In this document: positions 1 through 64,000 of the stretch, piece after piece
Layout of the letters: every line of letters begins with the position of its first letter
Numbering within the stretch: position 1 is the first letter of the stretch
Assembly: GCA_048772705.1 (NCBI GenBank)
Contig: JBLWGC010000123.1
Location: 1-64,000, forward strand
DNA: 64,000 nucleotides
Reading direction: 5' to 3'
From: Leidyana gryllorum EB-2025a
Lineage: Eukaryota; Protista; Apicomplexa
Translations under genes and position numbers: made by a program
Notes under the pieces: model-generated
Told to the model about the DNA's origin: nothing
The model's database searches: none
The model's input: the letters and a program-made list of their open reading frames with translations, nothing else

Positions 1-53
1 AAGGTCGCCGATTTGTTTCCTTCCCGAGGGAAGGTGTAACCAGTTACACTCTC

Positions 54-135
54 GGCAAGGTGGCCGAGCGGTTAAAACGGCGGCCTTCTAAGCCGTTGGG
101 TTTCAGCCGCGTGAGTTCGAATCTCACCCTTGTCG
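54..135 (+). pseudogene. tRNA-Ser(GCT)-derived; anticodon mutated to TCT
   Basis: Matches 9526-9607 with D-arm and anticodon changes. Confidence 0.8.
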
Positions 136-248
136 GTAGCATTCGGGGAGAGCGCAACTGCTTCAATGATTGAAATGAGGTTTCTGCCCGACTCGAACTC
201 GCTCCACGCTGGACGCTATACCAAGTCAATTGTACTGTCTGATGCACC

Positions 249-320
249 GGCTGTTTGGTGTAGTGGTATGATTCTTCCTTCGGGTGGAAGAAGTCCTGGG
301 TTCGATTCCCAGAACAGCCC
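249..320 (+). tRNA. tRNA-Pro(CGG)
   Basis: Cloverleaf, A/B boxes. Confidence 0.88.
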
Positions 321-401
321 CGTTGCTTGTCGGTTGACCCGACGCTCCATCTCATTTCAAGATGGTACGGCTTTCGTCCAAAGCTGCAGCTGAGGAAGTT
401 G

Positions 402-474
402 TCCACTGTAGTCTAAGTGGCTAGGATATGCGACTCTCACCCGCACGATCCGGGTTCAAGTCCCGGCAGTGGAA
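402..474 (+). tRNA. tRNA-Glu(CTC)
   Basis: Cloverleaf; one anticodon-stem change. Confidence 0.85.
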
Positions 475-531
475 ATCCAGCAGAGTGTGCTTGTAGGCAA
501 CGGTTCCACTACTCCCAGAGACATTGATTTG

Positions 532-604
532 CACCGCCCGCGGGGCTCGAACCCGCGACTGCAAGATTAAAAGTCTTGCGCTCTACCGACTGAGCTAGGG
601 CGGC
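532..604 (-). tRNA. tRNA-Lys(TTT)
   Basis: Cloverleaf. Confidence 0.9.
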
Positions 605-732
605 AAGGAAGCTCTAAACTTAGTTACACCCTATTTGCCGGTGGGTGGATCCGTGGAAGTATTGAGTGGTGGAACAATGTGCTTCAGTAACTTCCGTCAA
701 TAGGGGCTCATTCGTGATGTCCAGTTAACATT

Positions 733-803
733 GCCTTCTTAGCTTGGGGCAGAGCATTCGCTTAGTAAGTGAAAGGTCGCCGGTTCGATTCGGGCAGAAG
801 GCT
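733..803 (+). tRNA. tRNA-Thr(AGT), degenerate
   Basis: Cloverleaf with mismatches. Confidence 0.78.
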
Positions 804-851
804 TGGCTCACGAGCCAATCTATCCTGCAACTGTTCCCTTCTGCGCACACT

Positions 852-923
852 TAGCAGTGCGTCGTTTCAATCGACGGACCTTTGCGTTATGAGCCTAACA
901 CTCTTCCACTGAGCTACACTGCT
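852..923 (-). tRNA. initiator tRNA-Met(CAT), degenerate
   Basis: A1-U72; anticodon stem mismatches. Confidence 0.78.
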
Positions 924-1027
924 CAGTCTGCAACATGGAAGAGGTAGCCGAAATGTGATCCTCGAGATGTTAGTTGCCCTGACTGCCCTACCGAAGCGGG
1001 CTAACGAGGTGGCTGTGTTGGTTCTTA

Positions 1028-1097
1028 GGGCTGTTCTGGAATCGAACCCAGGACTCCTTCCACTCTGAGGAAGGATTATACCAGCAGAGCAACAGCC
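1028..1097 (-). pseudogene. tRNA-Pro pseudogene
   Basis: Decayed Pro body. Confidence 0.75.
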
Positions 1098-1183
1098 GAA
1101 TACTTGGGTGCATGCAACCGGATATACAAATGGAGATTCGAATCTACTGTGGCCTTTTCCAGCTTTTTTGGGATGATCGCCGC

Positions 1184-1267
1184 TGCACAGAATGGGATTC
1201 GAACCCATGCAGACTTGCGCCTACCAGAACTTGAGTCTGGCCCCTTAGACCACTCGGGCATCTGTGC
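1184..1267 (-). tRNA. tRNA-Leu(CAA)
   Basis: Class II cloverleaf. Confidence 0.9.
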
Positions 1268-1417
1268 ATTACTTTCCTTCTGAGTTCCAAAGTGTTAATG
1301 GCTTCCGTTGCGACCGCCGATGTCGTTCTGGCTGCGGTGTGCCGCCCCAAAGTACTCTCACGGCCCGGGGTGCTTAGATGGTAACGTATCTGACTGTAGT
1401 GGTGGCATCAGATATTC

Positions 1418-2021
1418 TGTTGTAGTTCGTGTTGGCCTGATGGTCAACTTCCTATCGGGTGGCCAAATTCGACTTGGTGAAATTTCCAACCCAATTAACA
1501 TCCATCTGGATACTTCCCTACATATTTGGCACTTATATAGGGGCATGTATAAGATGGTGAAAAGGCATTATTAACGAACGTAAAGCAACTACTACTAAAG
1601 CGTAAAGGCTAATGCACCCTAGTGGTCTGAGCTCTCTGCGACAGTGTAACTGTGCAGACACTCACATGAATGATCAGAGTGTGGTGTCGGGGAGAACTAC
1701 CGTGTGTGTCCAGCGCGAGGCTCCGCAAGAGTGCGAGCGACTGGCACATGGGTGGAGTGAGAGAGACACCAGAGCGAGAGACACACGCGAGCAAAGTTGG
1801 CTAAGTCAGAGTTGGACTAGGCAAGAGGCGGCCTAAGATAACTTTTGCACTTGGTACAACAAGTCGTAGTTCTTGTTTTGCGCCGTCGTGTGCGACATAT
1901 TCGTGGTAGACTTGTCGGCAAAAATACTAACTGGGTTCTAAGTCTGACTGGTGGTCGAAAGTATGCAGAGATGAGAACTGGGCCTCGTTCCCCCCTTGAG
2001 TAGCGACTTGGGGTTACAACA
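1418..2021. mobile_element. Solo-LTR-like element, family A (604 bp)
   Basis: TGTTGTA...TACAACA ends; TSD TATTC at 1413-1417 and 2022-2026; empty site near 55960; interrupts a Tyr pseudogene. Confidence 0.9.
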
Positions 2022-2147
2022 TATTCCACGAGTAAATTCCGTCCCACCCGAAGTTGAGGAGTGGACTTCTTGCAACGCAGTTCGTCTGACGCTCCTGTTC
2101 CATCCCATCCTGATCGATGCTTCGCCACCTCTACAGCCTCGCTCAAA

Positions 2148-2219
2148 GACCGAGTCGTCTAGTGGTTAGGACAGCACGTTGTGGCCGTGCAAACCCAGGC
2201 TCGATTCCTGGCTCGGACA
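2148..2219 (+). tRNA. tRNA-His(GTG)
   Basis: Cloverleaf; 5' end altered. Confidence 0.8.
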
Positions 2220-2312
2220 ACCAATCTAAAGTGCATTGCAATTCCCCTCCAAACCTCTCAGATCCTTATCGAGACTGAGAGACCAGTCAGAAAAGCTTAA
2301 GTGCGTGAGCAA

Positions 2313-2383
2313 AGCCTTCTGCCGGAATCGAACCGGCGACCTTTCGCTTACAAAGCGAATGCTCTGTCACCAGCTAAGAAGGC
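2313..2383 (-). tRNA. tRNA-Thr(TGT)
   Basis: Cloverleaf. Confidence 0.82.
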
Positions 2384-2484
2384 AATGTTAACGGAAGTTA
2401 CTGAAGCTCATTGTTCCACCGGTCGAACGGATCTAGGGCTCCACCCAACGGCAAATAGGGTGTAACTCAGTTTAGAGCTTCGTT

Positions 2485-2557
2485 GCCGCCCTAGCTCAGT
2501 CCGTAGAGCGCAAGACTTTCAATCTTGCAGTCGCGGGTTCGGGCTCCGCGGGCGGTG
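2485..2557 (+). pseudogene. tRNA-Lys body with TTC anticodon
   Basis: Loop CTTTCAA; D-loop GG lost. Confidence 0.75.
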
Positions 2558-2606
2558 CAAATCAATGTCTCTGGAAGCCGTAACCTACAACCACACTCTG
2601 CTGGAT

Positions 2607-2679
2607 TTCCACTCCCGGGACTTGAACCCGGATCGTGCGGGTGAAAGCCGCATATCCTAGCCACTTAGACTACAGTGGA
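2607..2679 (-). tRNA. tRNA-Glu(TTC)
   Basis: Cloverleaf. Confidence 0.85.
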
Positions 2680-2981
2680 CGAGTGGTTGAGTTGGGGCTT
2701 CGGCCGAGAGCCGTACCGTCTTGGAAATAATGGTATGTCGGCGTGATCAAGTGAGTGGATCTCTGATACAGATTCGGACTTAGTAACCAATTCCATTTGT
2801 ATTGATCGTGGAATCTTGGGCCTTCGCCGGGCCTTCACCGGGTACAGGGCGAGCTTTTTGCCGCCCCAACTCCGTCGGTGGAGCGCAAGACTTTTGATGG
2901 GAGAACCGCGGGTTCGGGGGGCGCGAGCAGTGCTGAATTGTATGCGAAGCCACTGGCCGCAAAATGCCGAGTTCGACAGGT

Positions 2982-3063
2982 GGCAACTTGCCCGAGTGGT
3001 TAGGGGGGTAGACTCGAAATCTATTGGGCCTGGTCCGCGCTGGTTCAAATCCAGCAGTTGTCG
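2982..3063 (+). tRNA. tRNA-Ser(CGA)
   Basis: Class II cloverleaf. Confidence 0.85.
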
Positions 3064-3127
3064 TGCGATGTGGTGGAAATGATGCAATTCCCAGCATCAA
3101 AAACTCATATGGGTCGAGACAGGGAAT

Positions 3128-3199
3128 GCCTCCTTAGCTTAGGGGCAGAGCATTCGCTTTGTAAGCGAAAGGTCGCTGGTTCGATTCCGGCAGAAGGCT
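3128..3199 (+). tRNA. tRNA-Thr(TGT)
   Basis: Cloverleaf. Confidence 0.85.
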
Positions 3200-3361
3200 T
3201 CAGTCATTAGCCTAAACATGGTTGCGATCATCCCCCCGCATTTTCGGACGGCGACTTGCACACAGCACTCGGCCATCTTGGCGAAGTGTTACCCGTTTCC
3301 TGTCCGTGAAATCTCAAAATGCGAGGAGTTCTGGGGTTGGAGGCCGGCGTGTTTTCTAGCG

Positions 3362-3433
3362 TCCGAGATAGTATAGTGGTTAGTATTTCCGCCTGTCACG
3401 CGGAAGACCCGGGTTCGATTCCCGGTCTCGGAG
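3362..3433 (+). tRNA. tRNA-Asp(GTC)
   Basis: Intact cloverleaf. Confidence 0.92.
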
Positions 3434-3736
3434 CAGTTCCAGCCCTCACAACTGGTGCAACTCAGATTTTGTCTCAGCTGGTCTGGACTTCATTCGGGAT
3501 TGTACGAGTGGGAGCCGCGTATAGTAGCCGACCTTGGAGAGACGTGGCATTGAACCCAGGACTTCTTCCAGCCGAAGAAAGAATCATATAACTAGACCAA
3601 ACAGCCCCCTGTGGGTGCCTCAGGTACTGGCAGGTTCCAAACCTGCGACTTCGTGGCTGAGAGACTTACCTCTGATGGCTGAGCTACGATTATTGGAGTT
3701 TGCGAGCAGCTTGCCGGTGCCCAGTCGATGCAGTGG

Positions 3737-3808
3737 AGCCTTCAGCCGGAATCGAACCGGCGACTTCTCGCTTACGAAGCGAACGCTATGCCCCTAAGCT
3801 AAGAAGGC
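3737..3808 (-). tRNA. tRNA-Thr(CGT)
   Basis: Cloverleaf with mismatches. Confidence 0.8.
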
Positions 3809-3884
3809 AATGGAAGCCGGAGATGACGAAACAATCGCTATTGACGGAGATTAGTGGAGCACTTTGCTGGAGTACTTCAATGAC

Positions 3885-3957
3885 TTCCACTGCCGGGACT
3901 TGAACCCGGATCGTGCGGGTGAAAGCCGCATATTCTAGCCACTTAGACTACAGTGGA
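3885..3957 (-). tRNA. tRNA-Glu(TTC)
   Basis: Cloverleaf. Confidence 0.88.
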
Positions 3958-4072
3958 CAACTCCCTCAGCTGCAGCTTTAGCCGAGAGCCGTACCCTTTT
4001 GACAAGACGTGGTTGCAATCCTGCGGTACAAAAAGGAGGATGTCTATACTAACCTGTGAACCATTGTAGCTG

Positions 4073-4145
4073 GGTCTTGTAGCTCAGTCGGCAGAGCGTG
4101 TGGCTGTTAACCACAAAGTCGCAGGTTCGAAACCTGCCAGGACCG
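4073..4145 (+). tRNA. tRNA-Asn(GTT)
   Basis: Intact cloverleaf. Confidence 0.92.
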
Positions 4146-4260
4146 GTTTCAGAGGCACACTAAACACTGACTGCGCTGCTCTCCCAATGGCACTTGTGGT
4201 CTGCGACTCTTCAAAGATGTAAGTTTGTTTGGATCCCGCCACGTGCAGCCGTATGTACTT

Positions 4261-4333
4261 TGGACGACCTGGGTATGGATCCCAGTACCTCTCGCATGCG
4301 AAGCGAGCGCACTACCATCTGAGCTAGCCGCCC
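4261..4333 (-). tRNA. tRNA-Ala(CGC), degenerate
   Basis: G3-U70; T-loop change. Confidence 0.8.
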
Positions 4334-4393
4334 ATGCGCTCTACATGGAAGACCTATTGCATCCAGTGGCTGACCGAGGGCCGATAAAACGGC

Positions 4394-4473
4394 TGACAAG
4401 AGTGGGATTCGAACCCACGCCCTTTCGGACTGCGGCCTTAACACAGCGCCTTGGACCACTCGGCCATCTTGCC
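4394..4473 (-). tRNA. tRNA-Leu(AAG)
   Basis: Class II cloverleaf. Confidence 0.9.
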
Positions 4474-4700
4474 GGAGTGTTCTTGGCTCGCCACTTTACA
4501 CGTTTTCTGTTCGTGAAGTCTCGAGAAGGAAGGCTTTTCTCACGGCCCGGGGTGCTTAGATGGCAACCCATCTGATGGTAGTGGTGGCATCAGCTATTCG
4601 ACGAGGAAATTCCGTCCGCCGGGAGTTGAGGAGTGGACTTCTTACAACGCATTCCATCCTGATCGATGCTTCGCTACCTCTACAGCCTCGCTCAAAGATT

Positions 4701-4772
4701 GTCCGAGTCGTCTAGTGGTTAGGACAGCACGTTGTGGCCGTGCAAACCCAGGCTCGATTCCTGGCTCGGACA
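4701..4772 (+). tRNA. tRNA-His(GTG)
   Basis: Cloverleaf; C54. Confidence 0.88.
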
Positions 4773-4847
4773 AGCAGTCTAAAGTGCATTGCTCTTCGCC
4801 CCGGTTGAAAATATTGTTGCAGCCATGGTCAAGCCTGTACGATCGGC

Positions 4848-4918
4848 TGCACCTTCCGGGACTCGAACCCGGGCTGCGAGCATGGGAAGCTCGCATCCTA
4901 CCCTTGAACCACAAGTGC
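4848..4918 (-). tRNA. tRNA-Gly(CCC)
   Basis: Cloverleaf. Confidence 0.82.
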
Positions 4919-5116
4919 ACTCGAGAAAGAGCTCCAGCACCCCGAGACTCGGCCGCAGTCTGCGTTGAGCTAGTGGGTGCCTCAAGTACTGGCAGGTTCC
5001 AGTCTGCGACTTTGTGGCTAAGAGACTTACCCTCTGGTGGCTGAACTACGAGGCTCGGCTAAGATGATTGGAGCTTGAGAGACTTAAGCTTTGCAGGTGC
5101 CCAGTCGATGTAGTCA

Positions 5117-5188
5117 AGCCTTCTGCCGGAATCTAACCGGCGACTTCTCGATTACGAAGCGAACGCTCTGCCCCTAAGCTAAGAAGGC
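5117..5188 (-). pseudogene. tRNA-Thr(CGT), degenerate
   Basis: B-box mutated. Confidence 0.75.
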
Positions 5189-5414
5189 AATGCAAGCCGA
5201 AGATCACGAATCAGACACTATTGACGGAGATTGCTGGGCACTTTGCTCAAGTATTCCACTGACTTCATCAACCACTGACTTCCACTGCCGGACTTGAACG
5301 CGGAGCTTGCGGGTGAGGCCGCATATCCTAGCCACTCAGACGACAGTGGGCAATATTCCACAGCGAAGGCAGCTACTCAGCCAAATCGTCGAAGTAAAGT
5401 GCTGAGCATTTGGC

Positions 5415-5486
5415 TACCTACGGCGACACTCAAACTCGCAACCTTTGGATAGAAGTCCAACGCGCTATCCATTGCGCCACGTAGGC
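5415..5486 (-). pseudogene. tRNA-Arg(TCT), degenerate
   Basis: Anticodon-loop deletion; B-box mutated. Confidence 0.75.
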
Positions 5487-5575
5487 CGCGGCTTTTCGAC
5501 TAGATTGAAATAACAACATTCACATTTTTGGACCACGCGCCAGCCGTTTCTCTGCAGCCAAAGTTGCATGGAGTT

Positions 5576-5648
5576 TGGACGACCTGGGTATCGATCCCAG
5601 TACCTCTCGCATGCAAAGCGAGCGCTCTACCATCTGAGCTAGCCGCCC
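5576..5648 (-). tRNA. tRNA-Ala(TGC)
   Basis: Intact cloverleaf. Confidence 0.9.
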
Positions 5649-5694
5649 ATCCGGTCTACATGGAAAACCTTCTGCATCCAGTGGCTGACCGAGC

Positions 5695-5774
5695 TGACAA
5701 GAGTGGGATTCGAACATACGCCCTTTCGGACTGCGGCCTGAACACAGCGCCTTAGACCACTCGGCCATCTTGCC
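5695..5774 (-). tRNA. tRNA-Leu(CAG)
   Basis: T-stem mismatches. Confidence 0.8.
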
Positions 5775-5869
5775 GGAGCCTTCTTGGCTCGCCACTTTAC
5801 ACGTTTTCTGTCCGTGAAGTCTCGAGGAGGGAGGACTTTTGGGGTTGAAGGCCGGTGTGTTTGTGAGCC

Positions 5870-5941
5870 ACCGAGATAGTATGGTGGTTAGTATTTCCGC
5901 CTGTCACGCGGAAGACCCGGGTTCGATTCCCGGTCTCGGAG
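5870..5941 (+). tRNA. tRNA-Asp(GTC)
   Basis: Cloverleaf; position 1 altered. Confidence 0.82.
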
Positions 5942-6203
5942 ATAGATCGTCTTCCGCTCTAGATTTCGTGATGCTCACCTGAACGATGCGTGTTACAGCC
6001 ACCGAGGATGGAACTCGGGACCTTTTGGGTGTTAAACAGACGTCGTGATCACTAGATGGCTGCACGGAGCTTCCGGACTGCGAAAGGGGCGTGTGTCTCT
6101 GGAACCACGTATCCGATGAGCCTGGTTTTTATGTATCGGCCTAAGTTGGACGGCCTGGACTAGTTAAGACCCTTCGCTTTGTATTCAGGAATGGAGATGT
6201 CAC

Positions 6204-6274
6204 GCATCTGTGGTTTAGTGGTAGACTGTGTCGTTGCCACCGAGACGACCCAGGTTCGATTCCCGGCAGATGCA
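6204..6274 (+). tRNA. tRNA-Gly(GCC), degenerate
   Basis: Cloverleaf with mismatches. Confidence 0.78.
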
Positions 6275-6338
6275 GAGAAGATGGCACATGGTGGAGTTTC
6301 ATGCGTGAGTTGGTGTTTGACCCTCCGATCACATCGCA

Positions 6339-6421
6339 CGAGAACTGCTGCATTTGAATCAGCGCGGGCCAAGCCCAGTAGATTTCTAGTCTACTCCCCT
6401 TAACCACTCGGGCAAGTTGCC
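6339..6421 (-). pseudogene. tRNA-Ser(AGA), degenerate
   Basis: Several stem mismatches. Confidence 0.75.
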
Positions 6422-6518
6422 ACCTGTCGGACTTAGTAACAGATTCCATCCGTATTCCTCGTAGAATGTTGGGGCTTCCTCGGGTCGAGGGCAACTCTGT
6501 ATCACAGATCCATTCCCT

Positions 6519-6592
6519 TGGTCACGCCCGGGCTCGAACCGGGGACCTTGAGCTTATTAGGCTCACGCTCTAACCGACTGAGCTACGCGACC
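6519..6592 (-). tRNA. tRNA-Ile(AAT)
   Basis: Intact cloverleaf. Confidence 0.92.
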
Positions 6593-6798
6593 ACTTCTGG
6601 GACGACACTCGGCACCGGTTCGAGAACCTTTTGCCTCTGCTTGCCGCGGTATTGGATCGATATCCAGAATGTCACTTCGGACCACCCCGGAATCTGAGTC
6701 TCACTTCTGAGCTTAAGAGCTTGAAGTGCCACTATTGACTATCTGAGGTTGAGCCTCAGTTCAATCATTCAAGCAGTTGCGCTCTCCCCGAGTGCCAC

Positions 6799-6896
6799 GG
6801 ACAATGGTGAGATTTCAACTCACGTGGGTGAAACCCAACGGCTTAGCAAGCCGCCGCCTTAACCGGCCGCCGCCTTAACCACTCGGCCACCTTGCC
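6799..6896 (-). pseudogene. tRNA-Ser(GCT) pseudogene with internal ~16-bp duplication
   Basis: gccgccgccttaacc repeated. Confidence 0.78.
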
Positions 6897-7005
6897 GACG
6901 ACATCTCATACTCGCTGGCACTTTTTCACAACGGTTTGGGGTCCTCGTCAAGCTTGCTGAACCGTATGTGACATCACTGGCTGCAAAATGCCGAGTTCGA
7001 CAGGT

Positions 7006-7087
7006 GGCAACTTGCCCGAGTGGTTAAGGGGGTAGACTCGAAATCTACTGGGCCTGGCCCGCGCTGGTTCAAATCCAGCAGTTGTCG
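7006..7087 (+). tRNA. tRNA-Ser(CGA)
   Basis: Intact. Confidence 0.92.
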
Positions 7088-7151
7088 TGCGATGTGGTGG
7101 AAATGATGCAATTCCCAGCATCAAAAACTTATATGGGTCGAGACAGGGAAT

Positions 7152-7223
7152 GCCTCCTTAGCTTAGGGGCAGAGCATTCGCTTTGTAAGCGAAAGGTCGC
7201 TGGTTCGATTCCGGCGGGAGGCT
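7152..7223 (+). tRNA. tRNA-Thr(TGT)
   Basis: Cloverleaf. Confidence 0.88.
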
Positions 7224-7385
7224 TCAGTCATTAGCCTAAACATGGTTGCGATCATCCGCCCGCATTTTCGGACGGCGGCTTGCACACAGCACTCGGCCAT
7301 CTTGCCGAAGTGTTACCCGTTTCCTGTCCGTGAAATCTCAAAATGCGAGGAGTTCTGGGGTTGGAGGCCGGCGTGCTTACTAGCG

Positions 7386-7457
7386 TCCGAGATAGTATAG
7401 TGGTCAGTATTTCCGCCTGTCACGCGGAAGACCCGGGTTCGATTCCCGGTCTCGGAG
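7386..7457 (+). tRNA. tRNA-Asp(GTC)
   Basis: Intact. Confidence 0.92.
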
Positions 7458-7722
7458 CAGTTCCAGCCCTCACAACTGGTGCAACTCAGATGATGTCTCA
7501 GCTGGTCTGGACTTCATTCGGGATTGTACGAGTGGGAGCCGCGTATAGTAGCCGACCTTGGAGAGACGTGGCATTGAACCCAGGACTTCTTCCAGCCGAA
7601 GGAAGAATCATACCACTAGACCAAACAGCCCCCTGTGGGTGCCTCAGGTACTGGCAGGTTAGAAGCCTGCGGCTTCGTGGCTAAGAGACTTACCGCTTGC
7701 AGGTGCCTAGTCGATGCAGTCG

Positions 7723-7794
7723 AGCCTTCTGCCGGAATCGAACCGGCGACCTTTCGCTTACTAAGCGAATGCTCTGCCCCTAAGCTAAGAAGGC
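7723..7794 (-). tRNA. tRNA-Thr(AGT)
   Basis: Intact. Confidence 0.92.
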
Positions 7795-7862
7795 AATCCA
7801 GGCCGAAGATCAAGAATCAGTCACTATTGACGGGGATTACTGAGGCACTTTGCTCGAGTAGC

Positions 7863-7934
7863 TTCCACTGCCGGGTCTTGAACCCGGATGTACGGGTGAG
7901 AGCCGCATAACCTAGCCACTTAGACTACAGTGGA
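7863..7934 (-). tRNA. tRNA-Glu(CTC), degenerate
   Basis: 1-nt deletion. Confidence 0.75.
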
Positions 7935-49340: not shown

Positions 49341-49363
49341 GTCGGCGGTTTCGATTCTGACCG

Positions 49364-55815: not shown

Positions 55816-56089
55816 ATTACTTTCCTTCTGAGTTCCAAAGTGTTAATGGCTTCCGTTGCCACCGATGTCGTTCTGGCTGCGGTGTGCCGCCCCGAAGTAC
55901 TCTCACGGCCCGGGGTGCTTAGATGGTAACGTATCTGACTGTAGTGGTGGCATCAGATATTCCACGAGTAAATTCCGTCCCACCCGAAGTTTGAGGAGTG
56001 AACTTCTTGCAACGCAGTTCGTCTGACGCTCCTGTTCCATCCCATCCTGATCGATGCTTCGCTACCTCTACAGCCTCGCTCAAAGATTT

Positions 56090-56161
56090 GTCCGAGTCGT
56101 CTAGTGGTTAGGACAGCACGTTGTGGCCGTGCAAACCCAGGCTCGATTCCTGGCTCGGACA
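56090..56161 (+). tRNA. tRNA-His(GTG)
   Basis: Cloverleaf. Confidence 0.88.
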
Positions 56162-56254
56162 ACCAATCTAAAGTGCATTGCAATTCCCCTCCAAACCTCT
56201 CAGATCCTTATCGAGACTGAGAGACCAGTCAGAAAAGCTTAAGTGCGTGAGCAA

Positions 56255-56325
56255 AGCCTTCTGCCGGAATCGAACCGGCGACCTTTCGCTTACAAAGCGA
56301 ATGCTCTGCCACCAGCTAAGAAGGC
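56255..56325 (-). tRNA. tRNA-Thr(TGT)
   Basis: Cloverleaf. Confidence 0.85.
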
Positions 56326-56426
56326 AATGTTAACGGAAGTTACTGAAGCTCATTGTTCCACCGGTCGAACGGATCCAGAGCTCCACCCAACGGCAGATAG
56401 GGTGTAACTTAGTTTAGAGCTTCGTT

Positions 56427-56499
56427 GCCGCCCTAGCTCAGTCCGTAGAGCGCAAGACTTTCAATCTTGCAGTCGCCGGTCCGAGCTCCGCGGGCGGTG
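56427..56499 (+). pseudogene. tRNA-Lys body with TTC anticodon; T-arm decayed
   Basis: Duplicate of 2485-2557. Confidence 0.75.
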
Positions 56500-56548
56500 C
56501 AAATCAATGTCTCTGGAAGCCGTTACCTACAACCACACTCTGCTGGAT

Positions 56549-56621
56549 TTCCACTCCCGGGACTTGTACCCGGATCGTGCGGGTGAAAGCCGCATATCCT
56601 AGCCACTTAGACTACAGTGGA
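56549..56621 (-). tRNA. tRNA-Glu(TTC), degenerate
   Basis: T-loop change. Confidence 0.78.
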
Positions 56622-56921
56622 CGTGTGGTTGAGTTGGGGCTTCGGCCGAGAGCCGTACCGTCTTGGAAAAAATGGTATGCCGGCGTGATCAAGTGAGTGA
56701 ATGTCTGATACAGATTCGGTTAGTAACCAATTCCATTTTTATTGATCGTGGAATCTTGGGCCTTCGCCGGGCCTTCGCCGGGTACAGGGCGAGCTTCCTT
56801 GCCGCCCCAACTCCGTCGGTGGAGCGCAAGACTTTTGATGGGAGAACCGCGGGCTCGGGGGGGGCGAGCAGTGCTGAACCGTATGCGAAGCCACTGGCTG
56901 CAAAATGCCAAGTTCGACAGC

Positions 56922-57003
56922 GGCAACTTGCCCGAGTGGTTAAGGGGGTAGACTAGAAATGTACTGGGCCTGGCCCGCGCTGGTTCAAATCCAGCAGTTG
57001 TTG
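56922..57003 (+). tRNA. tRNA-Ser(AGA), degenerate
   Basis: Mismatches. Confidence 0.8.
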
Positions 57004-57079
57004 TGCGATGTGGTTGGAGGGGTAAACACCAACTGACGCATGAATTTCTGGAATGATGGAAAAACAACAATGTGTCCTC

Positions 57080-57150
57080 TGCATCTGCCGGGAATCGAAC
57101 CCGGGTCGTCTCGATGGCAATGAGACATTCTACCACTAGACCACAGATGC
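57080..57150 (-). tRNA. tRNA-Gly(GCC)
   Basis: One anticodon-stem mismatch. Confidence 0.84.
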
Positions 57151-57719
57151 GTGACACCTCCATTCCTGACCACCAAGTAATGAGTCTGGAGCGGGGGATG
57201 GTTTTGGGCCTATGGCCAACGTACCGCGTCTGACTCCAGATCAGCAGGTTGGGTTTTCGAATCACTATGGGCTCAATCAGACTCTTTTGTTTTTCCCGTG
57301 TGAGGCTCAACCTGAAAAGAGTGGGATTTGGACCCACGCCCTTTCAAACTGCGACTTGAATACAGCGCCTTAGACCCCTCAGCCATCTTATCAGCTCGAT
57401 TCCTGTCCCGCTACTCCAAGCGTTCCCTGTCTGTTGAAGCTAGAGAATGGAAAAGCTGGGCTCTGAGGTTGGGCTGTGCCTCCGACATGGTATCAAAGTT
57501 ATATTTCCGCCTGCCACGCCAACGATCGGGTGGGTATCAGCTCTGAACGCATTCATTTCCAATCCCAATGGCTTCATACACTCTTTTAATTCTTGGTCGT
57601 GAATGGTTAGCACTGCAGGCTTTGAATCTCCCGAGCTGGGTTCGATTCCCGGCGCGACTCGCAACTAGTTCTACTTCTTGAAACTTCGCAACTTCTCTTG
57701 GTTTCCGCAAAGCTTTCGT

Positions 57720-57792
57720 GCAGTCATGGTCTAGTGGTTACGACGTCTGCTTAACACGCAGAAGGTCCCGAGTTCGATCCCAGGTGGCTGTA
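57720..57792 (+). tRNA. tRNA-Val(AAC), degenerate
   Basis: T-stem mismatches. Confidence 0.78.
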
Positions 57793-57951
57793 ACTCGAAT
57801 CTTTGAAGTGAGTGCCACCAAAGCGAGGAAACAGGCTCTCTCCAAAACAGGGCATCGAACCCGCGTCTTCCGCGTCTTCAACCCTAAAAGTCTTCCTTCT
57901 CGAGAACTACACGGACAGAAAACCTGTAAAGTGGCGAGCCAAGGGCGCTCC

Positions 57952-58031
57952 GGCAAGATGGCCGAGTGGTCTAAGGCGCTGTGTTCAGGCCGCAGTCCGA
58001 AAGGGCGTGGGTTCGAATCCCACTCTTGTCA
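57952..58031 (+). tRNA. tRNA-Leu(CAG)
   Basis: Intact. Confidence 0.92.
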
Positions 58032-58091
58032 ACCGTTGTATTGGCACTCGGTGAGCCACTGGATGCAATATGTTTTCCATGTAGAGCGGAT

Positions 58092-58164
58092 GGGCGGCTA
58101 GCTCAGATGGTTGAGCGCTCGCTTTGCATGCGAGAGGTACTGGGATCGATACCCAGGTCGTCCA
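58092..58164 (+). tRNA. tRNA-Ala(TGC)
   Basis: Cloverleaf. Confidence 0.88.
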
Positions 58165-58378
58165 AACTCAGTAGGGCGGCACCTGCCGGTAGTTATACAG
58201 AGTTGCGACCTCTAAGAGAGAGTCGGACATCGCAGCTCCCGGTACTGCCAGGCTTCGAAACTGCGACGTTGTGGTGAACAGCTACACGCTTTGTCGACTC
58301 AGCTACAACACCCAGTTGCAATGTTCTTTAGAGCGAGGGAGAATGATACCTTAAGGTCAAACAGCCTCCTGGGCGGCC

Positions 58379-58603
58379 TGCCCGGCCAGGGCACTCGTAG
58401 GTGTCAAATGCTGGAGTACTCGGCGGTCGCGTTCGGCTGTCATTGGGTTGATTTGCTCCCCAGGGGGATCGAACCCTCGACCTTCGGCACATAAGGCCGA
58501 TGCTCTAACCAGCTGAGCTAGGGGGGCGATCACCGCCGTGCCACCGCGTAACTCACATTCGATTCTATCTCAGGGGGTTGTTACATCAAGTTTCAGAATG
58601 CCC
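58379..58603. mobile_element. Small insertion carrying a tRNA-Ile(TAT)-like gene
   Basis: Absent at the homologous site near 36480; flanked by CGGCC repeats; imperfect 13-bp inverted repeat 58384-58396 / 58596-58608. Confidence 0.5.
58454..58527 (-). tRNA. tRNA-Ile(TAT)-like, intronless
   Basis: TCGGC-CTTATGT-GCCGA; A/B boxes; one acceptor and one T-stem mismatch. Confidence 0.75.
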
Positions 58604-58838
58604 CGGCCTCGTGCCGACCAAGCTTGTCAGCGTCTCTGTTAATTTACCACGGCGGTTTGAGGCGTGCCTCCTGCGTCTGTCGGGAATCGAACCTGGGTCG
58701 TCTCGGTGGCAACGACACATTCTACCACTAGACCACAGATGCACAACTCGTTGTTGTTTGAGCTCGTGCACAATAACGGCCGTTCTGCTTCAGAAGAGAA
58801 GACAGAATCGAGTTGAGCGAGTATGGCGGGTAGTTTGT

Positions 58839-58910
58839 GGGTACGTAGCTCAGTGGTAGAGCAGCTGACTGCAGATCAGCAAGTCCGTGGTTCAACTCCG
58901 CGCGTGCCCT
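58839..58910 (+). tRNA. tRNA-Cys(GCA)
   Basis: Intact. Confidence 0.92.
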
Positions 58911-59399
58911 GAAGATGGTTTGGAACCATCGGATATGTTGGACCACAAGGCAATGAGTCTGGAGCGGGGGATGATTTTGGACCTATGGCGGAACGTAGCG
59001 CGTCCGACTCCAGCTTAGAAAATTGGGTGCTGTTCGATAGTGTCTATATGGCTTTGATGTTTGATTTCAGCCCTGGGGGATCCAGCATCCGGGTCGGTGC
59101 CATCTGTCGTCGCAGAAGTGGTCGCGTAGCTCAGTCGGTTACCGGTTCGAGCCCGGGCGTGACCAAGTGAGTGGATCTCTGATAAAGAGTCGCCCTGGAC
59201 CCAAGGGAGCCCCAACATTCTGCGACCAATACGAAAGGAATTTGTTACCAAGTCCGAGCTTCCTTGCCGCGCCAGCTCCGTCGGTAGAGCGCAAGACTTT
59301 CAATCGAGAGACCGCGGGTTCGGACAGCGCGAGCGGTCCGAGTCAAGCTGCTGAACCGTATGTGAAGCCACTGCCTGCGGCATGCCGAGTTCTACCGTT

Positions 59400-59481
59400 G
59401 GCAACTTGCCCGAGTGGTTAAGGGGGTAGACTCGAAATCTACTGGGCCTGGCCCGCGCTGGTTCAAATCCAGCAGTTGTCG
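59400..59481 (+). tRNA. tRNA-Ser(CGA)
   Basis: Intact. Confidence 0.92.
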
Positions 59482-59557
59482 TGTGATGTGGTTGGAGGGG
59501 TAAACACCAACTGACGCATGAATTTCTGCAATGGTGGAAAAACAACCATGTGTCCTC

Positions 59558-59628
59558 TGCATCTGCCGGGAATCGAACCCGGGTCGTCTCGATGGCAACG
59601 AGACATTCTACCACTAGACCACAGATGC
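59558..59628 (-). tRNA. tRNA-Gly(GCC)
   Basis: Intact. Confidence 0.92.
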
Positions 59629-59956
59629 GTGACACCTCCATTCCTGACCACAAAGTAATGAGTCTGAGCGGGGATGCTTTTGGGCCTCTGACGCAACGAC
59701 CGCGCCTGACTCCAGATCAGAGTTGGGTTTTCGAATCACTCTGGGCTCAATCAGACTATTTTGTTTTTCCCGTGTGAGGCTCAACCTGAAAAGAGTGGGA
59801 TTCGGACCCACACCCTTTCGAACTGCGACTTGAAGACAGTGCCTTAGACCACTCGGCCATCTTGCCGCACCGTTGTTGGCTCGTCGCTCCACGCTTTTTT
59901 GTCCGTGAGCCAAAATAGCAAGACTTCTGGGGTTGGAGGCCGGCGTGTTCAGAGCG

Positions 59957-60028
59957 TCCGAGATAGTATAGTGCTTAGTATTTCCGCCTGTCACGCGGAA
60001 GACCTGGGTTCGATTCCCGGTCTCGGAG
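59957..60028 (+). tRNA. tRNA-Asp(GTC)
   Basis: Cloverleaf. Confidence 0.84.
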
Positions 60029-60266
60029 CACAGTTGGTTTCGCTTGAGATTCTCTCCTTTGGTCCTCGGTGAAAGTTGCGAGCTACAGCCACCGAGGATC
60101 GAACTCGGGAATTTCTGCGTGTGAGGCAGACGTCGTAAGCACTAGACCATGGCTGCACGGAGCTTCCGGACTGTGAAAGCGGTGTGTGTCTCTGGAAACA
60201 GGTATCTGATGGAGGGCAGAAGGCTCGCACGGCTGCGAGGGATGACACCAAATGTCACGACCATTC

Positions 60267-60339
60267 TGCATCGCCCGTGGATCAAACACGGGACTTCCAG
60301 ATCTTCAGTCTGGCGCTCTCCCAACCGAGCAACCGAGGC
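60267..60339 (-). pseudogene. tRNA-Phe(GAA), degenerate
   Basis: Acceptor and B-box changes. Confidence 0.75.
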
Positions 60340-60639
60340 GGTAGGTAATCATGGAAGGCGGTGAAAATAAGGACTTACCGCGGCCGTATGTGGAGCCGAT
60401 CCTGGCCACATGACGGAACCGACAGTTGCCAACTTGCCCGGGTGGGGAACTAATGCAGATCAAACACGGGACTTCCAGATCTTCAGTCTGGCGCTCTCCC
60501 AACCGAGCAACCGAGGCGGTAGGTAATCATGGAAGGCGGTGAAAATAAGGACTTACCGCGGCCGTATGTGGAGCCGATCCTGGCCACATGACGGAACCGA
60601 CAGTTGCCAACTTGCCCGAGTGGGGAACTAATGCAGATC
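60280..60639. repeat. 2 x 178-bp tandem duplication (Phe/Ser pseudogene parts)
   Basis: Direct adjacent repeat with GATC junction microhomology. Confidence 0.85.
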
Positions 60640-60756
60640 CAGCAGTTGTCGTGCGATGTGATTGGAGGGGTTAGACACCAATTTACGCATGAATCGTGTG
60701 GTGGAAATGATACTATTTTCAGCATCAAAGCCTCATAGTGGATCGAGACCGGGGAA

Positions 60757-60828
60757 GCCTTCTTAGCTCAGGGGCAGAGCATTCGCTTTCTAAGCGAAAG
60801 ATCGCCGGTTCGATCCCGGCAGAAGGCT
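60757..60828 (+). tRNA. tRNA-Thr body with TCT anticodon
   Basis: Stems intact; loop TTTCTAA. Confidence 0.78.
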
Positions 60829-61460
60829 TTGCTCACGAGCTTAAGGTTTTCTGGCTGGACTCTCAGTCTCAATAACGACCTGAGAGGGTTGCCAAGTTCT
60901 CAGGCCTTTTCTGCCCCCATTCGTCAGTGCAACTGTGGTCACTCGTCCACTGTAGTCTCGGTGGCCAGTATATGCGGCGCCAACCCGGACCATCCCGGTT
61001 CGAGTCTCGGCAGCGCAAATGCAAGTGGGTGTAGGCAACATACTGCATTCTTACTCCCCGGCCCATTCATCCGCACCGCCCACGGGACTTCAATCTGCGA
61101 CTGCAAGATTAAGAGCTTGCGCTGCACCGACTGAGCTAGGACGACAAGGAAAGTCTAGACTTAGTTACACTCTATTTGCCTCAGGGTGGAGCCATGTAAG
61201 TCATTGGGCAGTTCCACCGCAGTCCTCAGTATTTCCGCCCGTCAAGCGGAAGACCTGGGTTCGACTGCCGGTCTTACAGCACAGCTCGTTCAGCTTTAGA
61301 CTTCGTTTGGTGCTCACTCAAAAAATGCGGTTCGGGAGCAAACCGCGATGTCCAAGGGTCGCACGACAGGCGTTCGCTCACTTGGTACAGCATCTGACTA
61401 CGGCGGGTGCGGCAGGTAGTCGACCGTTCGATTACCCCCTCCCCGACACTTGCCTCCTTA

Positions 61461-61541
61461 TGCAAGAAGTGGGGTTCGAACCCACGCGGAATTAACCAGT
61501 GGATCTTAAGGCCACCCCCTTAACCTCTCGGGCATTCTCGC
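61461..61541 (-). tRNA. tRNA-Leu(TAA)
   Basis: Homologous to 51372-51452. Confidence 0.78.
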
Positions 61542-61995
61542 AATGCAGCTTCGAAATAAGTAGTCTGGGGTTCCTGCGGGTAGCCAGTGCCGACCATGTG
61601 AGTGGGGTCTGAACACAGCCCCTTGCCCACGAGGGCATCTTGCCACATTCTGGTAGGCGCAAGTCTGCATGGGTGCGAATCCCATTCTGTGCAACGGTAC
61701 TCATTCCAGGGCGGAATTGGCCATTACATCGTGGATCCCCCTAACATTCGGCTGTTCGGTCTAGTGGTATGATCCTTCCTCAGGGGGTGGAAGGAGTCCT
61801 GGGTTCGATTCCTAAAACAGCCTTTTTGCTAGCCGCTGACGAGGGTCTAGGAGAGTTGATACACGCATCCCCTGTCTCAAATAGGATGTCTTTCGAACTC
61901 CGCCTACCACGTCACTCGACAGCTGCTAGATTCGAACCAGTGGGGCCAGGCGATACTGACGACTCAGGTGTTTAGACAGAGAGGCTGTGGGTTGT

Positions 61996-62068
61996 GCGGT
62001 GGTGGCGCAATGGATAGCGTGTTGCCCTCCGGAGGCAAAGGTTGTGGGTTCGAGTCCCGCCCACCGGT
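61996..62068 (+). tRNA. tRNA-Arg(CCG), degenerate
   Basis: TTGCC-CTCCGGA-GGCAA. Confidence 0.77.
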
Positions 62069-62766
62069 CTCGTGGTCCCGCTCAACCGTGGAATCGAGAA
62101 GAGTGGCTGCCATTTGGAGCCATGCAGACTTGCGCCATCCAAACTCAAGTTTGGCACCGCAGGCCACCGCGATCTGTGCCGCAGTGTTGAGCTTGAGGGC
62201 TCGAAGTGCCACTGTTGAGGAACCGAGGCTGGAAAAGTTCACTTGGGTTTAGCGGATAGGCGGCTATCCCAAGTGCCAGAGAGGTGACTTTGCAGGCCAA
62301 ATGTGCGGGGGTCGATACCCAGGTGGGGGAGCTCTCGAAGAAAAGACATCTGTGCACCATTTCTATAAGTGTGTCCACCTGCGGGGGCTCACCAGTGCGT
62401 CGTTTCGATCGACGGAACTCTGGGTCATGAGCCCAACACTCTCCTCGTGTCTTTCTGAGTGCTACAGCCTCTGTCGATCTTTCGACTGCACTTGTGGTCT
62501 GACGGCAAAATGCGACCGTGCTGAGGTCGTAACGCGGACTGAGTTCCCGCAGGTGCAGCCGTATGCAAGTCGGACGACCTGTCTATCGATCTCATCTGGC
62601 ATGTCAATGAGCACTCTACCCTTTGAGCTAGCGGTCTCCAACTTAGAAGAGCTATTGCATGCCCTCCTTGATGAGTGGACAATTGCCCGTTGAGAATCTG
62701 CGGAACGCTGCTGGCAAACTCGAGTCGCACGGCTGTGAGGGATGACACCAAATGTCACAACCTCTC

Positions 62767-62839
62767 TGCCTCGGCCGTGGATCGAACACGGGACTTCCAG
62801 ATCTTCAGTCTGGCGCTCTCCCAACTGAGCTACCGAGGC
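62767..62839 (-). tRNA. tRNA-Phe(GAA)
   Basis: Intact. Confidence 0.92.
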
Positions 62840-63318
62840 GGTAGGTAGTCACGGAAGGCGGTGAAGACGAGCACCTATCGCGGCCGTATGTGGGGCCACT
62901 GCCCGCTCAAAAGGCGAGGACTTCTGGGGTTGGAGGCCTGCGTGTTTACTAGCGTCCGAGATAGTATAGTGGTCAGTATCACGCCTGTCACGCGGAAGAC
63001 CCGGGGTTGATTCCCGGTCTTGGAGAAGTTCCAGCCCTCACAACTGCTGCAACTCAGATTTTGCCTCAGCTGGTCTGGACTTCATCCGGGATGGTACGAG
63101 TGGGAGCCGCGTATAGTAGCCGACCTTGGAGAGACGTGCCATTGAAGCCAGGACTTCTTCCACCCGAAGAAAGAATCATATAGCTAGACCAAACAGCCCT
63201 CTGTGGGTGCCTTAGGTACTGGCAGGTTCCAAACCTGCGACTTCGTGGCTAAGAGACTTACCTCTGTACAATGATGGGAGTTTGCGATAAGCTTGCAGGT
63301 GCCCAGTCGATGCATTCT

Positions 63319-63390
63319 AGCCTTCTGCCGGAATCGAACCGGCGACCTTTCGCTTACTAAGCGAATGCTCTGCCCCTAAGCTAAGAAGGC
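63319..63390 (-). tRNA. tRNA-Thr(AGT)
   Basis: Intact. Confidence 0.92.
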
Positions 63391-63477
63391 AATCCAGGCC
63401 GAAGATCACGAATCAGTCACTATTGACGGGGATTACTGAGGCACATTGCTCGAGCTGTTTCCCTTGCCGGTCCTTGA

Positions 63478-64000
63478 TGTTGTAACCCCAAGTCGCTACT
63501 CGAGGGGAACGAGGCCCAGTTCCCATCTCTGCATACTTTCGACCACAAGTCAGACTTAGAACCCAGTTAGTATTTTTGCCGACAAGTCTACCACGAATAT
63601 GTCGCACACGACGGCGCAAAACAAGAACTACGACTTGTTGTACCAAGTGCAAAAGTTATCTTAGGCCGCCTCTTGCCTAGTCCAACTCTGACTTAGCCAA
63701 CTTGCTTGCGTGTGTCTCTCGCTCTGGTGTCTCTCTCACTCCACCCATGTGCCAGTCGCTCGCACTCTTGCGGAGCCTCGCGCTGGACACACACGGTAGT
63801 TCTCCCCGACACCACACTCTGATCATTCATGTGAGTGTCTGCACAGTTACACTGTTGCAGAGAGCTCAGACCACCAGGGTGCATTTGCCTTTACGCTTTA
63901 GTAGTGGTTGCTTTACGTTCGTTAATAATGCCTTTTCACCATCTTATACATGCCCCTATATAAGTGCCAAATATGTAGGGAAGTATCCAGATGGATGTTA
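63478..64000. mobile_element. Family A element, inverted, truncated by the window end
   Basis: Begins TGTTGTAACCCC; inserted in a degenerate tRNA-Glu. Confidence 0.88.

Follow-up and report, generated by a model that had tools for sequence, protein, structure and literature searches.

Gene content of the window

The window, i.e., the whole stretch of 64,000 nucleotides analysed here, is confirmed as a genuine part of a tRNA gene patchwork of about 2 megabases in a gregarine genome; HSP90 places the organism in Gregarinoidea. The tRNA genes number 249 according to ARAGORN and 247 according to Rfam RF00005, with 130 on the plus and 119 on the minus strand. Neighbouring pairs are tandem (n = 93), convergent (n = 78) or divergent (n = 77) with a median gap of 117 bp. 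BLAST of modal copies delineates 376 tRNA-derived pieces which cover 41% of the window bases; 303 are full-length and 164 of these have at least 97% identity. The modal copies possess an intact cloverleaf and A and B boxes, and have no encoded CCA; Rfam scores reach 74 bits. The window is composed of about 12.5 kb of non-redundant sequence (library of 12,483 bp), and 98% of its bases have a paralogue.

A sequence-only reading had claimed more than 200 tRNA genes on both strands, serving all 20 amino acids plus iMet, with Leu-TAG, Val-TAC and Sec missing and without a protein gene. For the window all of this is borne out; the longest ORF has 234 aa, and Pfam gives no match for eight ORFs of 123-234 aa. 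Leu-TAG is rare genome-wide (14 copies, in other array contigs), and Val-TAC is represented by 1 copy in the sample, in another array contig. That tRNA genes fill the entire window is correct for most of it; overlooked were about 4 kb of LTR sequence from two retrotransposon families and the array edge at about 63,450. Rfam detects no 5S gene in the window. The features are compiled in Table 1.

Table 1. Positions of array features in the window
Positions	Strand	Feature	Remark
53..63390		Aperiodic two-strand mosaic of tRNA genes and pseudogenes	249 ARAGORN genes, 376 tRNA-derived pieces
1418..2021	+	Solo LTR, family 1, 604 bp	TG...CA ends, target duplication TATTC, within Tyr pseudogene
8526..8598	+	Gln body with amber anticodon CUA	T-arm/B-box damaged
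12537..12609	-	Chimeric gene: Asp 5' part, Gly-GCC 3' end	Joined across common T-arm/B-box
16590..17192	+	Solo LTR, family 1	Target duplication GGGTT, 36 bp upstream of Tyr gene
21357..21811	+	455-bp segment: 5' part of Arg-ACG, His, Tyr pseudogene	Native site, comparison with C138
21811..27934	+	22-gene block, 6.1 kb	Repeated in C138, same order, 99.9% identity
22996..23079	+	Ser body with Ala anticodon	Anticodon-switched example, 95% to modal
26451..27467	-	Full and partial family-1 LTR in tandem	Target duplication CCATC, Tyr pseudogene/His interval
30841..31442	+	Solo LTR, family 1	Target duplication ACTGG
45308..45947	+	Solo LTR, family 2, 640 bp	Target duplication GAATC, tRNA-like A/B-box modules
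46704..47019		316-bp insert, 42% GC	No paralogue in sampled array
54507..54579	+	Chimera of Phe (5' part) with Lys (3' arm and flank)	
63478..64000	-	3' LTR of family-1 element	Continues to 64,077; array edge

Aperiodic order and rearrangement

A fixed repeat unit is missing, as the sequence-only reading had it. The best lag match is 0.085 versus 0.033 expected, and TRF reports only ten local duplications of 2-3 copies each in the window. Gene-order runs in common have a median of 3 and a maximum of 10 (1 and 4 in the shuffled control). The ratio of direct to inverted paralogous blocks is 204:204.

Could an assembler have scrambled a periodic array at shared tRNA nodes? Many array contigs are short, several seem to end at retroelements, and some look redundant, two having an Ile-UAU match at the identical coordinate. 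Yet paralogous blocks are 75-99% identical, mostly 75-97%, with at least 99% in 9 pairs only, and each tRNA family has several diverged flank types. Whole-tRNA overlaps are present in only 4/77 of the non-LTR private junctions, the aperiodic order of 22 genes recurs in a second contig, C138, and contigs of >1.2 Mb point to long reads. Further, target-site duplications, an empty site and excision-capture by microhomology are not produced by assemblers. The explanation, which the sequence-only reading had named as its refuting case, fails on this internal evidence because new junctions are mostly in spacers and because C138 displays excision with re-insertion and an empty LTR site; its chance of being right is very slight. 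A search of sequencing runs returned none from this organism and four with matches, to tRNA bodies alone.

C138 allows individual events to be followed. The 455-bp segment is missing there from its native site and is re-inserted about 3 kb away at 100% identity. The LTR at 30841..31442 has its empty site in C138, with flanks 99.6-99.8% identical, and the tandem LTRs at 26451..27467 recur in identical structure. Recent near-identical blocks have a median of about 550 bp and most end in a switch to a more diverged paralogue: at about 99% identity 93/139 block ends continue into a diverged homologue, and in 58 of 102 clear identity drops another near-identical donor exists across the switch. Such paralogue switching, seen in both orientations, is what ectopic exchange or gene conversion leaves behind in the sequence. 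Blunt or microhomology junctions number 33 in spacers and 8 in tRNA, and donor-side breakpoints avoid good genes (16/84 vs 31% expected, p = 0.012), p-values here and below being optimistic because copies share mutations by descent. Ku70/80-like genes are encoded in the genome.

The tRNA genes themselves were considered as main recombination nodes and rejected: the distal end of a gene lies at only 4/139 recent block ends, four-gamete flank patterns occur in just 6/30 families, and a strict scan yields two clear chimeras. The recombinogenic domain proposed earlier is supported. Shuffling is mainly exchange between diverged paralogous blocks, complemented by end-joining and by solo LTRs from two chromodomain Ty3/gypsy families.

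Copy decay, terminators and tRNA supply

Broken copies have been amplified as well, just as the sequence-only reading stated, e.g., a Tyr pseudogene, Gln-CUA (four times, a second copy being at 35714-35786) and a Lys body with UUC (five times). In about 8% of the anticodon calls the copy is a mutated one with the body of another family. A pyrrolysine tRNA was dismissed; the gene with the amber anticodon CUA is a damaged Gln gene. The tRNA bodies accumulate differences more slowly than the spacers (0.67 to 0.41 of their rate), which could be due to conversion instead of selection, and 27% of the copies equal the modal body. Mutations are spread evenly across boxes, stems and anticodon; neither a methylation- or RIP-like pattern nor a transcription-type strand bias was seen in the array copies.

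These data bear on the suggestion that the array serves as a binding platform for TFIIIC/condensin, with selection acting on the internal promoter boxes and not on the tRNA product. A/B-box units at a density of about four to six per kb and the box-bearing tRNA-like modules in family-2 LTRs are compatible with it. However, in good copies the B-box differs at 2.8% vs about 3% elsewhere (p = 0.76), i.e., it is not protected, and in decayed copies it is mutated more often than anticodon positions 35-36 (22.7% vs 15.1%, p = 0.007), opposite to the prediction. Selection for B-boxes is not supported, and a platform is highly improbable. Next to negligible is an accumulation of tRNA-derived SINEs or tRNA copies retroposed by the resident retrotransposons. 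Young retroelements with intact ORFs adjoin, one of them tRNA-primed, yet the copies move in multi-gene blocks with native, family-specific 5' and 3' flanks, the Tyr intron is retained, modal genes end without CCA, and the genes are devoid of flanking tails or target duplications.

Most genes have no nearby terminator. A T-run within 15 nt downstream exists in 2.8% of 357 intact genes, and the median distance is 332 nt; Trp and Gly-GCC are exceptions. A T4 after a gap of 8-13 nt is found at 37 Asp places genome-wide, about 10%. T-runs occur at background frequency and have not been purged. A TATA-like upstream element was rejected, as it is present in only 14% of flanks, and the flanks have a flat composition. 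Because a T-run is not close by, most genes would either be transcribed on into their neighbours, with trimming, or be silent; 208/357 intact genes are predicted to traverse an opposite-strand gene before the first T4.

Arrays of a similar kind are estimated at 1.7-2.5 Mb, or 11-16% of the 15.5-Mb assembly, a size possibly inflated by array contigs which represent alternative haplotypes. The sequence read amounts to 162 kb, about 7% of the arrays. The whole arrays are estimated to hold 7,000-10,000 working and decaying tRNA genes, about 200 copies per family. Apicomplexans are noted for minimal tRNA sets, and that of the gregarine assembly is 150-200 times larger. All 58 Ile-UAU matches are at low coordinates, mostly in contigs with further array matches; among the contigs sampled Ile-UAU and Leu-UAG look array-bound. 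The cell appears to draw its tRNA from the arrays, and we infer that array copies are expressed. With usage taken from two HSP90 genes, copy number correlates with amino-acid use (rho 0.67, p = 0.001), and in 10/12 boxes the commonest anticodon fits the commonest codon class. This match could be inherited from an ancestral cluster (rho 0.71 with L029, see below).

Is this ordinary dosage amplification for tRNA output in large, fast-growing trophozoites, with scrambling as an incidental matter? The copy numbers, which follow amino-acid and codon use, and gene bodies more conserved than spacers agree with it. On the other hand, Plasmodium and Cryptosporidium manage with 45 tRNA genes in total and Gregarina niphandrodes has 231 annotated (PMC9250747), nearly half of the full-length copies do not reach 97% identity, the anticodon is switched in 8% and the proximal terminator is missing in 97%. 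We consider dosage distinctly unlikely. The earlier reading is supported as to the aperiodic all-isotype field; its preference for a structural domain over dosage is weakened by copy numbers which track amino-acid use and by arrays which are the apparent tRNA source.

Known tRNA arrays, turnover and chromosomal setting

The closest known cases, the arrays of Entamoeba and Schizosaccharomyces japonicus, are periodic, unlike the aperiodic gregarine array. In Entamoeba, arrays take up >10% of the genome and contain most tRNA genes (500-7,000), with flanking retrotransposons; E. histolytica possesses 25 uniform tandem units, each with no more than 5 genes and with short tandem repeats rich in AT, which are subject to concerted evolution (PMC2652664). 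The gregarine is likewise a protist parasite with retrotransposons at the flanks of its arrays, and these may also exceed 10% of the genome and contain most tRNA genes, yet it has an aperiodic mosaic of diverged copies and GC-rich spacers without short repeats; a fixed unit of up to 5 genes, near-uniform units and intergenic short tandem repeats were not found. Closest, and left out of the analogues named in the sequence-only reading, are the centromeric/subtelomeric tRNA/LTR arrays of S. japonicus, which extend over hundreds of kb and added 2,623 new tRNA genes in the complete assembly (PMC7619369). Multi-isotype arrays, thousands of extra genes, LTRs adjoining and inside and a similar genome size are shared. 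The S. japonicus units are periodic, of fixed order and 1.2-6.8 kb long, some with 5S rRNA (PMC7619369), whereas the gregarine array lacks a unit, has its genes in random orientation, mixes all isotypes in one field and is heavily decayed. The human chr1q23.3 tRNA tandem repeat (PMC4041453) and the silenced Arabidopsis clusters (PMC7544208, PMC12308677) are likewise amplified tRNA genes associated with boundaries or heterochromatin; these differ in having fixed few-isotype units, a tiny genome share and a dispersed functional set elsewhere. A description of a gregarine tRNA array was not found in the literature.

A compact all-isotype cluster, with 43 genes on both strands within 6.8 kb, is present in L029 (metagenome contig Ga0114129_10037694), whose source is probably a related gregarine. 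Its Thr, Gly-GCC and Leu-AAG bodies are near-identical to those of the array and the isotype proportions are similar; in contrast, its spacers are mostly unique, decayed copies are not obvious and 42/43 genes have a T-run within 15 nt. Synteny was ruled out. There is no gene order in common, so that a single-cluster origin is an inference.

With moderate confidence we favour the following course. An ancestral tRNA set, one compact all-isotype cluster, would have been amplified more than a hundredfold in a compartment which is rich in retrotransposons and probably heterochromatic, and would now turn over by birth and death in an aperiodic steady state. The window is made up of the 12.5 kb of gene-plus-spacer modules. 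New neighbours are created by blunt or microhomology joining, for the most part in spacers, and fragments are also excised and re-captured locally; chromovirus insertions are reduced to solo LTRs, and a few crossovers inside tRNA genes have given chimeras. Since every module occurs in both orientations at 75-99% identity no unit could homogenise, and therefore the array would remain aperiodic. Breaks probably begin where Pol III units are dense or replication stalls. The cell's tRNA would be supplied by some of the copies, single copies being nearly neutral. Giant eukaryotic tRNA arrays found in the literature are periodic; an aperiodic one displays another kind of steady state, with rearrangement faster than homogenisation. 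As copies differ in sequence and flanks each is uniquely mappable. This opens several questions to direct tests: the function of giant tRNA arrays, the choice of copies by Pol III, the ability of tRNA genes to work when no oligo-T terminator is next to them, and the tolerance of a cell for hundreds of anticodon-switched genes.

A role in centromeres or heterochromatin, if any, would be additional to this turnover. A heterochromatin-like setting is supported by the array adjoining nested chromodomain Ty3/gypsy clusters in two contigs and containing their solo LTRs. One may envisage centromeric or pericentromeric domains kept for chromosome function, in which two-strand read-through without terminators yields dsRNA for Argonaute-dependent heterochromatin, to which chromodomain retrotransposons would then be directed. 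This is compatible with the turnover mechanism, and the array is a candidate for gregarine centromeres, of which no description was found in the literature. In favour are the nested chromovirus clusters in C123 and C43, the order in C43 (array, retroelements, then at least one protein gene), at least two Piwi-domain genes, the predicted opposite-strand traverses, and the centromeres of S. japonicus, which are tRNA arrays with LTRs (PMC7619369). Yet the arrays are spread over dozens of contigs, T-runs are not purged and mutations have no transcription-type strand bias. We regard a centromeric role as possible, if doubtful. Unlikely is the more ambitious combination in which the terminator-less megabase field would be sole tRNA source and centromeric or heterochromatic scaffold at once, with tRNAs cut from long two-strand precursors and antisense-driven Argonaute silencing masking thousands of mutant, potentially mistranslating copies.

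The array terminates at a nested retrotransposon cluster. Just past the window the family-1 edge element has a gag-like ORF and pol with protease, RT, RNase H, integrase and chromodomain; this order with a C-terminal chromodomain is present in L007 and L020. TG...CA ends, 5-bp target duplications, a tRNA primer site and a purine-rich tract likewise agree with the Ty3/gypsy chromovirus type; different are the role as a mere array component and the tRNA-like modules of the family-2 LTR. The latter has 99.1% and 97.0% identity to both LTRs of the full-length chromodomain element L020 in C43. The family-1 primer-binding site fits the 3' end of array tRNA-Phe plus CCA. The closest matches are unannotated metagenomic elements (52-59%); contigs with related retroelements have 0-3 tRNA genes and no arrays, and a scan of viral contigs gave no matches. 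Family 1 appears to prefer the Tyr/His module.

A field of tRNA genes and its extent

The window contains 249 tRNA genes according to ARAGORN and 247 according to Rfam, split 130 to 119 between the plus and minus strands. The sequence-only reading had claimed more than 200 genes on both strands; this is borne out. The median gap is 117 bp, and neighbouring pairs are tandem, convergent and divergent in a ratio of 93:78:77. When the commonest natural copy of each tRNA family (the modal copy) was used as a BLAST query, 376 tRNA-derived pieces emerged covering 41% of the bases; 303 of them are full-length, 164 of these with 97% identity or more to the modal copy. Eight longer ORFs in the window have no Pfam match. 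The gene order is aperiodic (best lag match 0.085 versus 0.033 expected) and shared gene-order runs have a median of 3 and a maximum of 10, in agreement with the proposed lack of a fixed repeat unit. Leu-TAG and Val-TAC, reported as missing, are indeed absent from the window, but they are present beyond it.

An assembler which scrambles contigs at shared tRNA nodes, the case which that reading had held against itself, should leave junctions with whole-gene overlap and near-identical units. However, just 4 of 77 junctions overlap a whole gene, no more than nine block pairs reach 99% identity, and an aperiodic order of 22 genes is found again at 99.9% in a second contig. Judged by the internal evidence of the contigs, the mosaic is not an assembly artefact. 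The array is real and unusual.

The assembly comprises 15.5 Mb in 237 contigs, and contig C123 (81 kb) begins with the 64 kb of the window. Because HSP90 is closest to those of Protomagalhaensia, Gregarina sp. Poly 1 and Gregarina niphandrodes (76-79% over the full query), the organism is a gregarine of the Gregarinoidea. There are two cytosolic HSP90 genes (L026 on C159, L028 on C104), 80% identical and both nearest to gregarine HSP90s; they may be paralogues, or the assembly may contain two species. Exact motif matches number 374 for Asp, 252 for Tyr and 52 for Ile-UAU genome-wide. Scaled by motif density in 145 kb of sampled array, these yield an estimated 1.7-2.5 Mb of array with roughly 7,000-10,000 genes at 4.0 per kb, a size which haplotype redundancy may have inflated. 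Plasmodium falciparum and Cryptosporidium parvum have 45 tRNA genes, G. niphandrodes has 231 (PMC9250747).

We found no description of a gregarine tRNA array in the literature. Its closest described counterparts are the tRNA/LTR arrays at the centromeres and subtelomeres of Schizosaccharomyces japonicus (PMC7619369) and the arrays of Entamoeba (PMC2652664). Scale and retrotransposon neighbours are common to all three, yet the gregarine array lacks the periodic unit which defines the other two and thus belongs to neither type.

Copying unit and turnover

A paralogue exists within the 162 kb read for 98% of the window, and first-occurrence sequence amounts to 12.5 kb. Blocks of at least 300 bp are as often direct as inverted (204:204), with median lengths of 380-590 bp and identities of 75-99%. 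Flanks have stayed specific to each tRNA family, with typically a single upstream type and as many as five downstream types. Therefore, the copying unit is multi-gene genomic DNA, and retroposed tRNA was rejected. Throughout the array, isoacceptors belonging to one codon box (Ala, Val, Glu, Lys, Ser, Leu, Pro) have a single common body, often with the same flanks, and most of their differences fall at wobble position 34; anticodons thus seem to have been swapped on a shared gene.

The mechanism of array turnover is well supported. Among 139 ends of recent segments (about 99% identity), 93 run on into a more diverged homologue, 15 are non-homologous joins in a spacer, 5 lie within a gene and 4 at the distal end of a gene. 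At 58 of 102 clear identity drops another near-identical donor spans the continuation. Such switches to a diverged homologue are characteristic of ectopic exchange or conversion between paralogous modules. End-joining creates new neighbours. Of 77 non-LTR private junctions, 41 are either blunt or show microhomology of 3-19 nt, and 33 of these 41 lie in spacers; the genome has two Ku-domain genes. Donor-side breakpoints avoid good genes (16/84 versus 31%, p=0.012). The segment at 21,357-21,811, located between intact Arg and Leu genes in the window, is deleted from its native site in contig C138, where both flanking genes are broken, and re-inserted about 3 kb away at 100% identity. C138 also preserves the empty site of the window LTR at 30,841. 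Crossovers inside tRNA genes are a minority (Asp/Gly and Phe/Lys chimeras); four-gamete flank patterns were seen in 6 of 30 tRNA families. Among Gln-TTG copies in the sample, the most frequent body (3 copies) has a Gly-GCC 3' arm at its end and, by its sequence, is a Gln/Gly chimera which was joined at the B-box and amplified.

Copy decay and tRNA supply

Relative to the spacers, tRNA bodies diverge 0.67 times as fast in young pairs and 0.41 times as fast in old pairs. The modal body recurs unchanged in 200 of 752 copies. Differences are spread evenly within genes (B-box 2.8%, anticodon positions 35-36 3.6%, stems 2.6-3.1%); therefore, single copies look nearly neutral. Upkeep of the tRNA pool looks like homogenisation or array-level selection. 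Decayed copies are damaged in the B-box (22.7%) more often than in the anticodon (15.1%), and the within-gene comparison reveals no favoured class which keeps the boxes while losing the body. This counts against the selected TFIIIC platform of the sequence-only reading. Of 594 called genes, 46 have an anticodon which belongs to another amino acid, and 22 of these have at least 95% identity; Ala and Arg anticodons on Ser bodies are among the cases. Since seryl-tRNA synthetase does not read the anticodon, such Ser copies would mistranslate if expressed. The risk of mistranslation argues that much of the field may be silent or its products destroyed. Copy number tracks amino-acid use in the two HSP90 genes (rho 0.67); both this value and the selection statistics are optimistic, since related copies were counted as independent.

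Only 2.8% of 357 intact genes possess a T4 within 15 nt, the median distance being 332 nt. Before their first T4, transcripts of 242 of the 357 would run through one or more further genes, and those of 208 through a gene on the opposite strand. The T-run frequency in the array equals background. T-runs roughly 8-16 nt downstream occur in Trp, Gly-GCC and about one tenth of the Asp copies; sampled iMet, His, Ala, Gln and Leu-CAA genes have none within 100 nt. Since all 58 Ile-UAU matches look array-bound, the arrays probably supply the cell's tRNA despite missing proximal terminators, which might proceed by trimming of read-through transcripts or with only a minority of the copies contributing.

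In contrast, 42 of the 43 genes in L029, a 6.8-kb metagenome contig with related tRNA bodies, have a T-run within 15 nt. Its spacers are mostly unique, and no gene order is common to it and the array. L029 looks like the unamplified state, its source taxon being presumed. It is a compact, near-complete eukaryotic tRNA cluster with long same-strand runs. Four unrelated sequencing runs contain short, deep contigs which join different tRNA genes with related bodies, hinting at a wider spread of dense clusters in this lineage.

Retroelement surroundings

Gypsy elements are already known from gregarines (PMC9141347). In C123 the array gives way, at about 63,450, to the 3' LTR of a Ty3/gypsy element encoding protease, RT, RNase H, integrase and chromodomain, and nested retroelements continue to the end of the contig. 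In contig C43 (553 kb) array occupies 1-10 kb and 130-136.5 kb with motif matches between, retroelements begin at 137 kb and reach at least 180 kb, with a Piwi-like gene located at 451 kb. Plasmodium and Cryptosporidium are not known to possess Argonaute, beside which the Piwi-domain genes of this genome are unusual. A centromeric or RNAi-heterochromatin role beyond tRNA supply is a plausible, if rather doubtful, candidate.

Coordinates of individual features (L-numbers denote stretches read for comparison)
Feature	Location	Other copies or remarks
Gln-TTG call, possible Gln/Gly chimera carrier	window 19921-19992 and other Gln-TTG calls	3 copies of the chimera in the sample
Family-2 LTR with tRNA-like A/B-box modules	window 45308-45947	L020 (C43) 3678-4325, 9280-9926
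Family-1 LTRs near Tyr or Tyr-pseudogene/His	window 1418, 16590, 26451	L024:4208; L006:1501; L003:1501
Further such LTRs, by coordinates alone	C74, C60, C90	
Recent two-copy head-to-tail duplications	window 49040-49341, 60280-60639, 16165-16299, 41363-41508	72-178 bp, 96-99%; copy parts of tRNA genes
AT-richer insert, 316 bp	window 46704-47019	no paralogue in sampled arrays; at most weakly similar to a repeat in the C43 retroelement cluster
Piwi-domain genes	C121:41751-42719, C121:208175-209125, C43:450907-452273	at least two strong, one divergent
Solo LTR without target duplication	L003:1501-2102 (C45)	flanks unrelated
tRNA-free island within array, 3 kb	L014:3100-6300 (C138 53-56 kb)	holds diverged family-1 LTR (90%)
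Small tandem repeat	L029 ~5,400-5,690	

Two chromodomain Ty3/gypsy families have left LTRs in the window. The one family-2 solo LTR (640 bp) is 99% identical to one LTR of a full-length element in C43, which has both LTRs and a 1,200-aa chromodomain pol ORF. The four family-1 insertions have 5-bp target duplications, all different. The primer-binding site of family 1 is the complement of the array tRNA-Phe 3' end plus CCA, indirect evidence that this sequence is made and matured. Family-1 LTRs tend to lie no more than about 100 bp from Tyr genes or a Tyr-pseudogene/His module. This holds for about 6 of 9 array sites read and for 3 of a further 13 located by coordinates, far more than the few percent expected. 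Target duplications differ among them, and the Tyr/His module is a possible insertion hotspot. The solo LTR in C45 suggests recombination between LTRs at two different sites.
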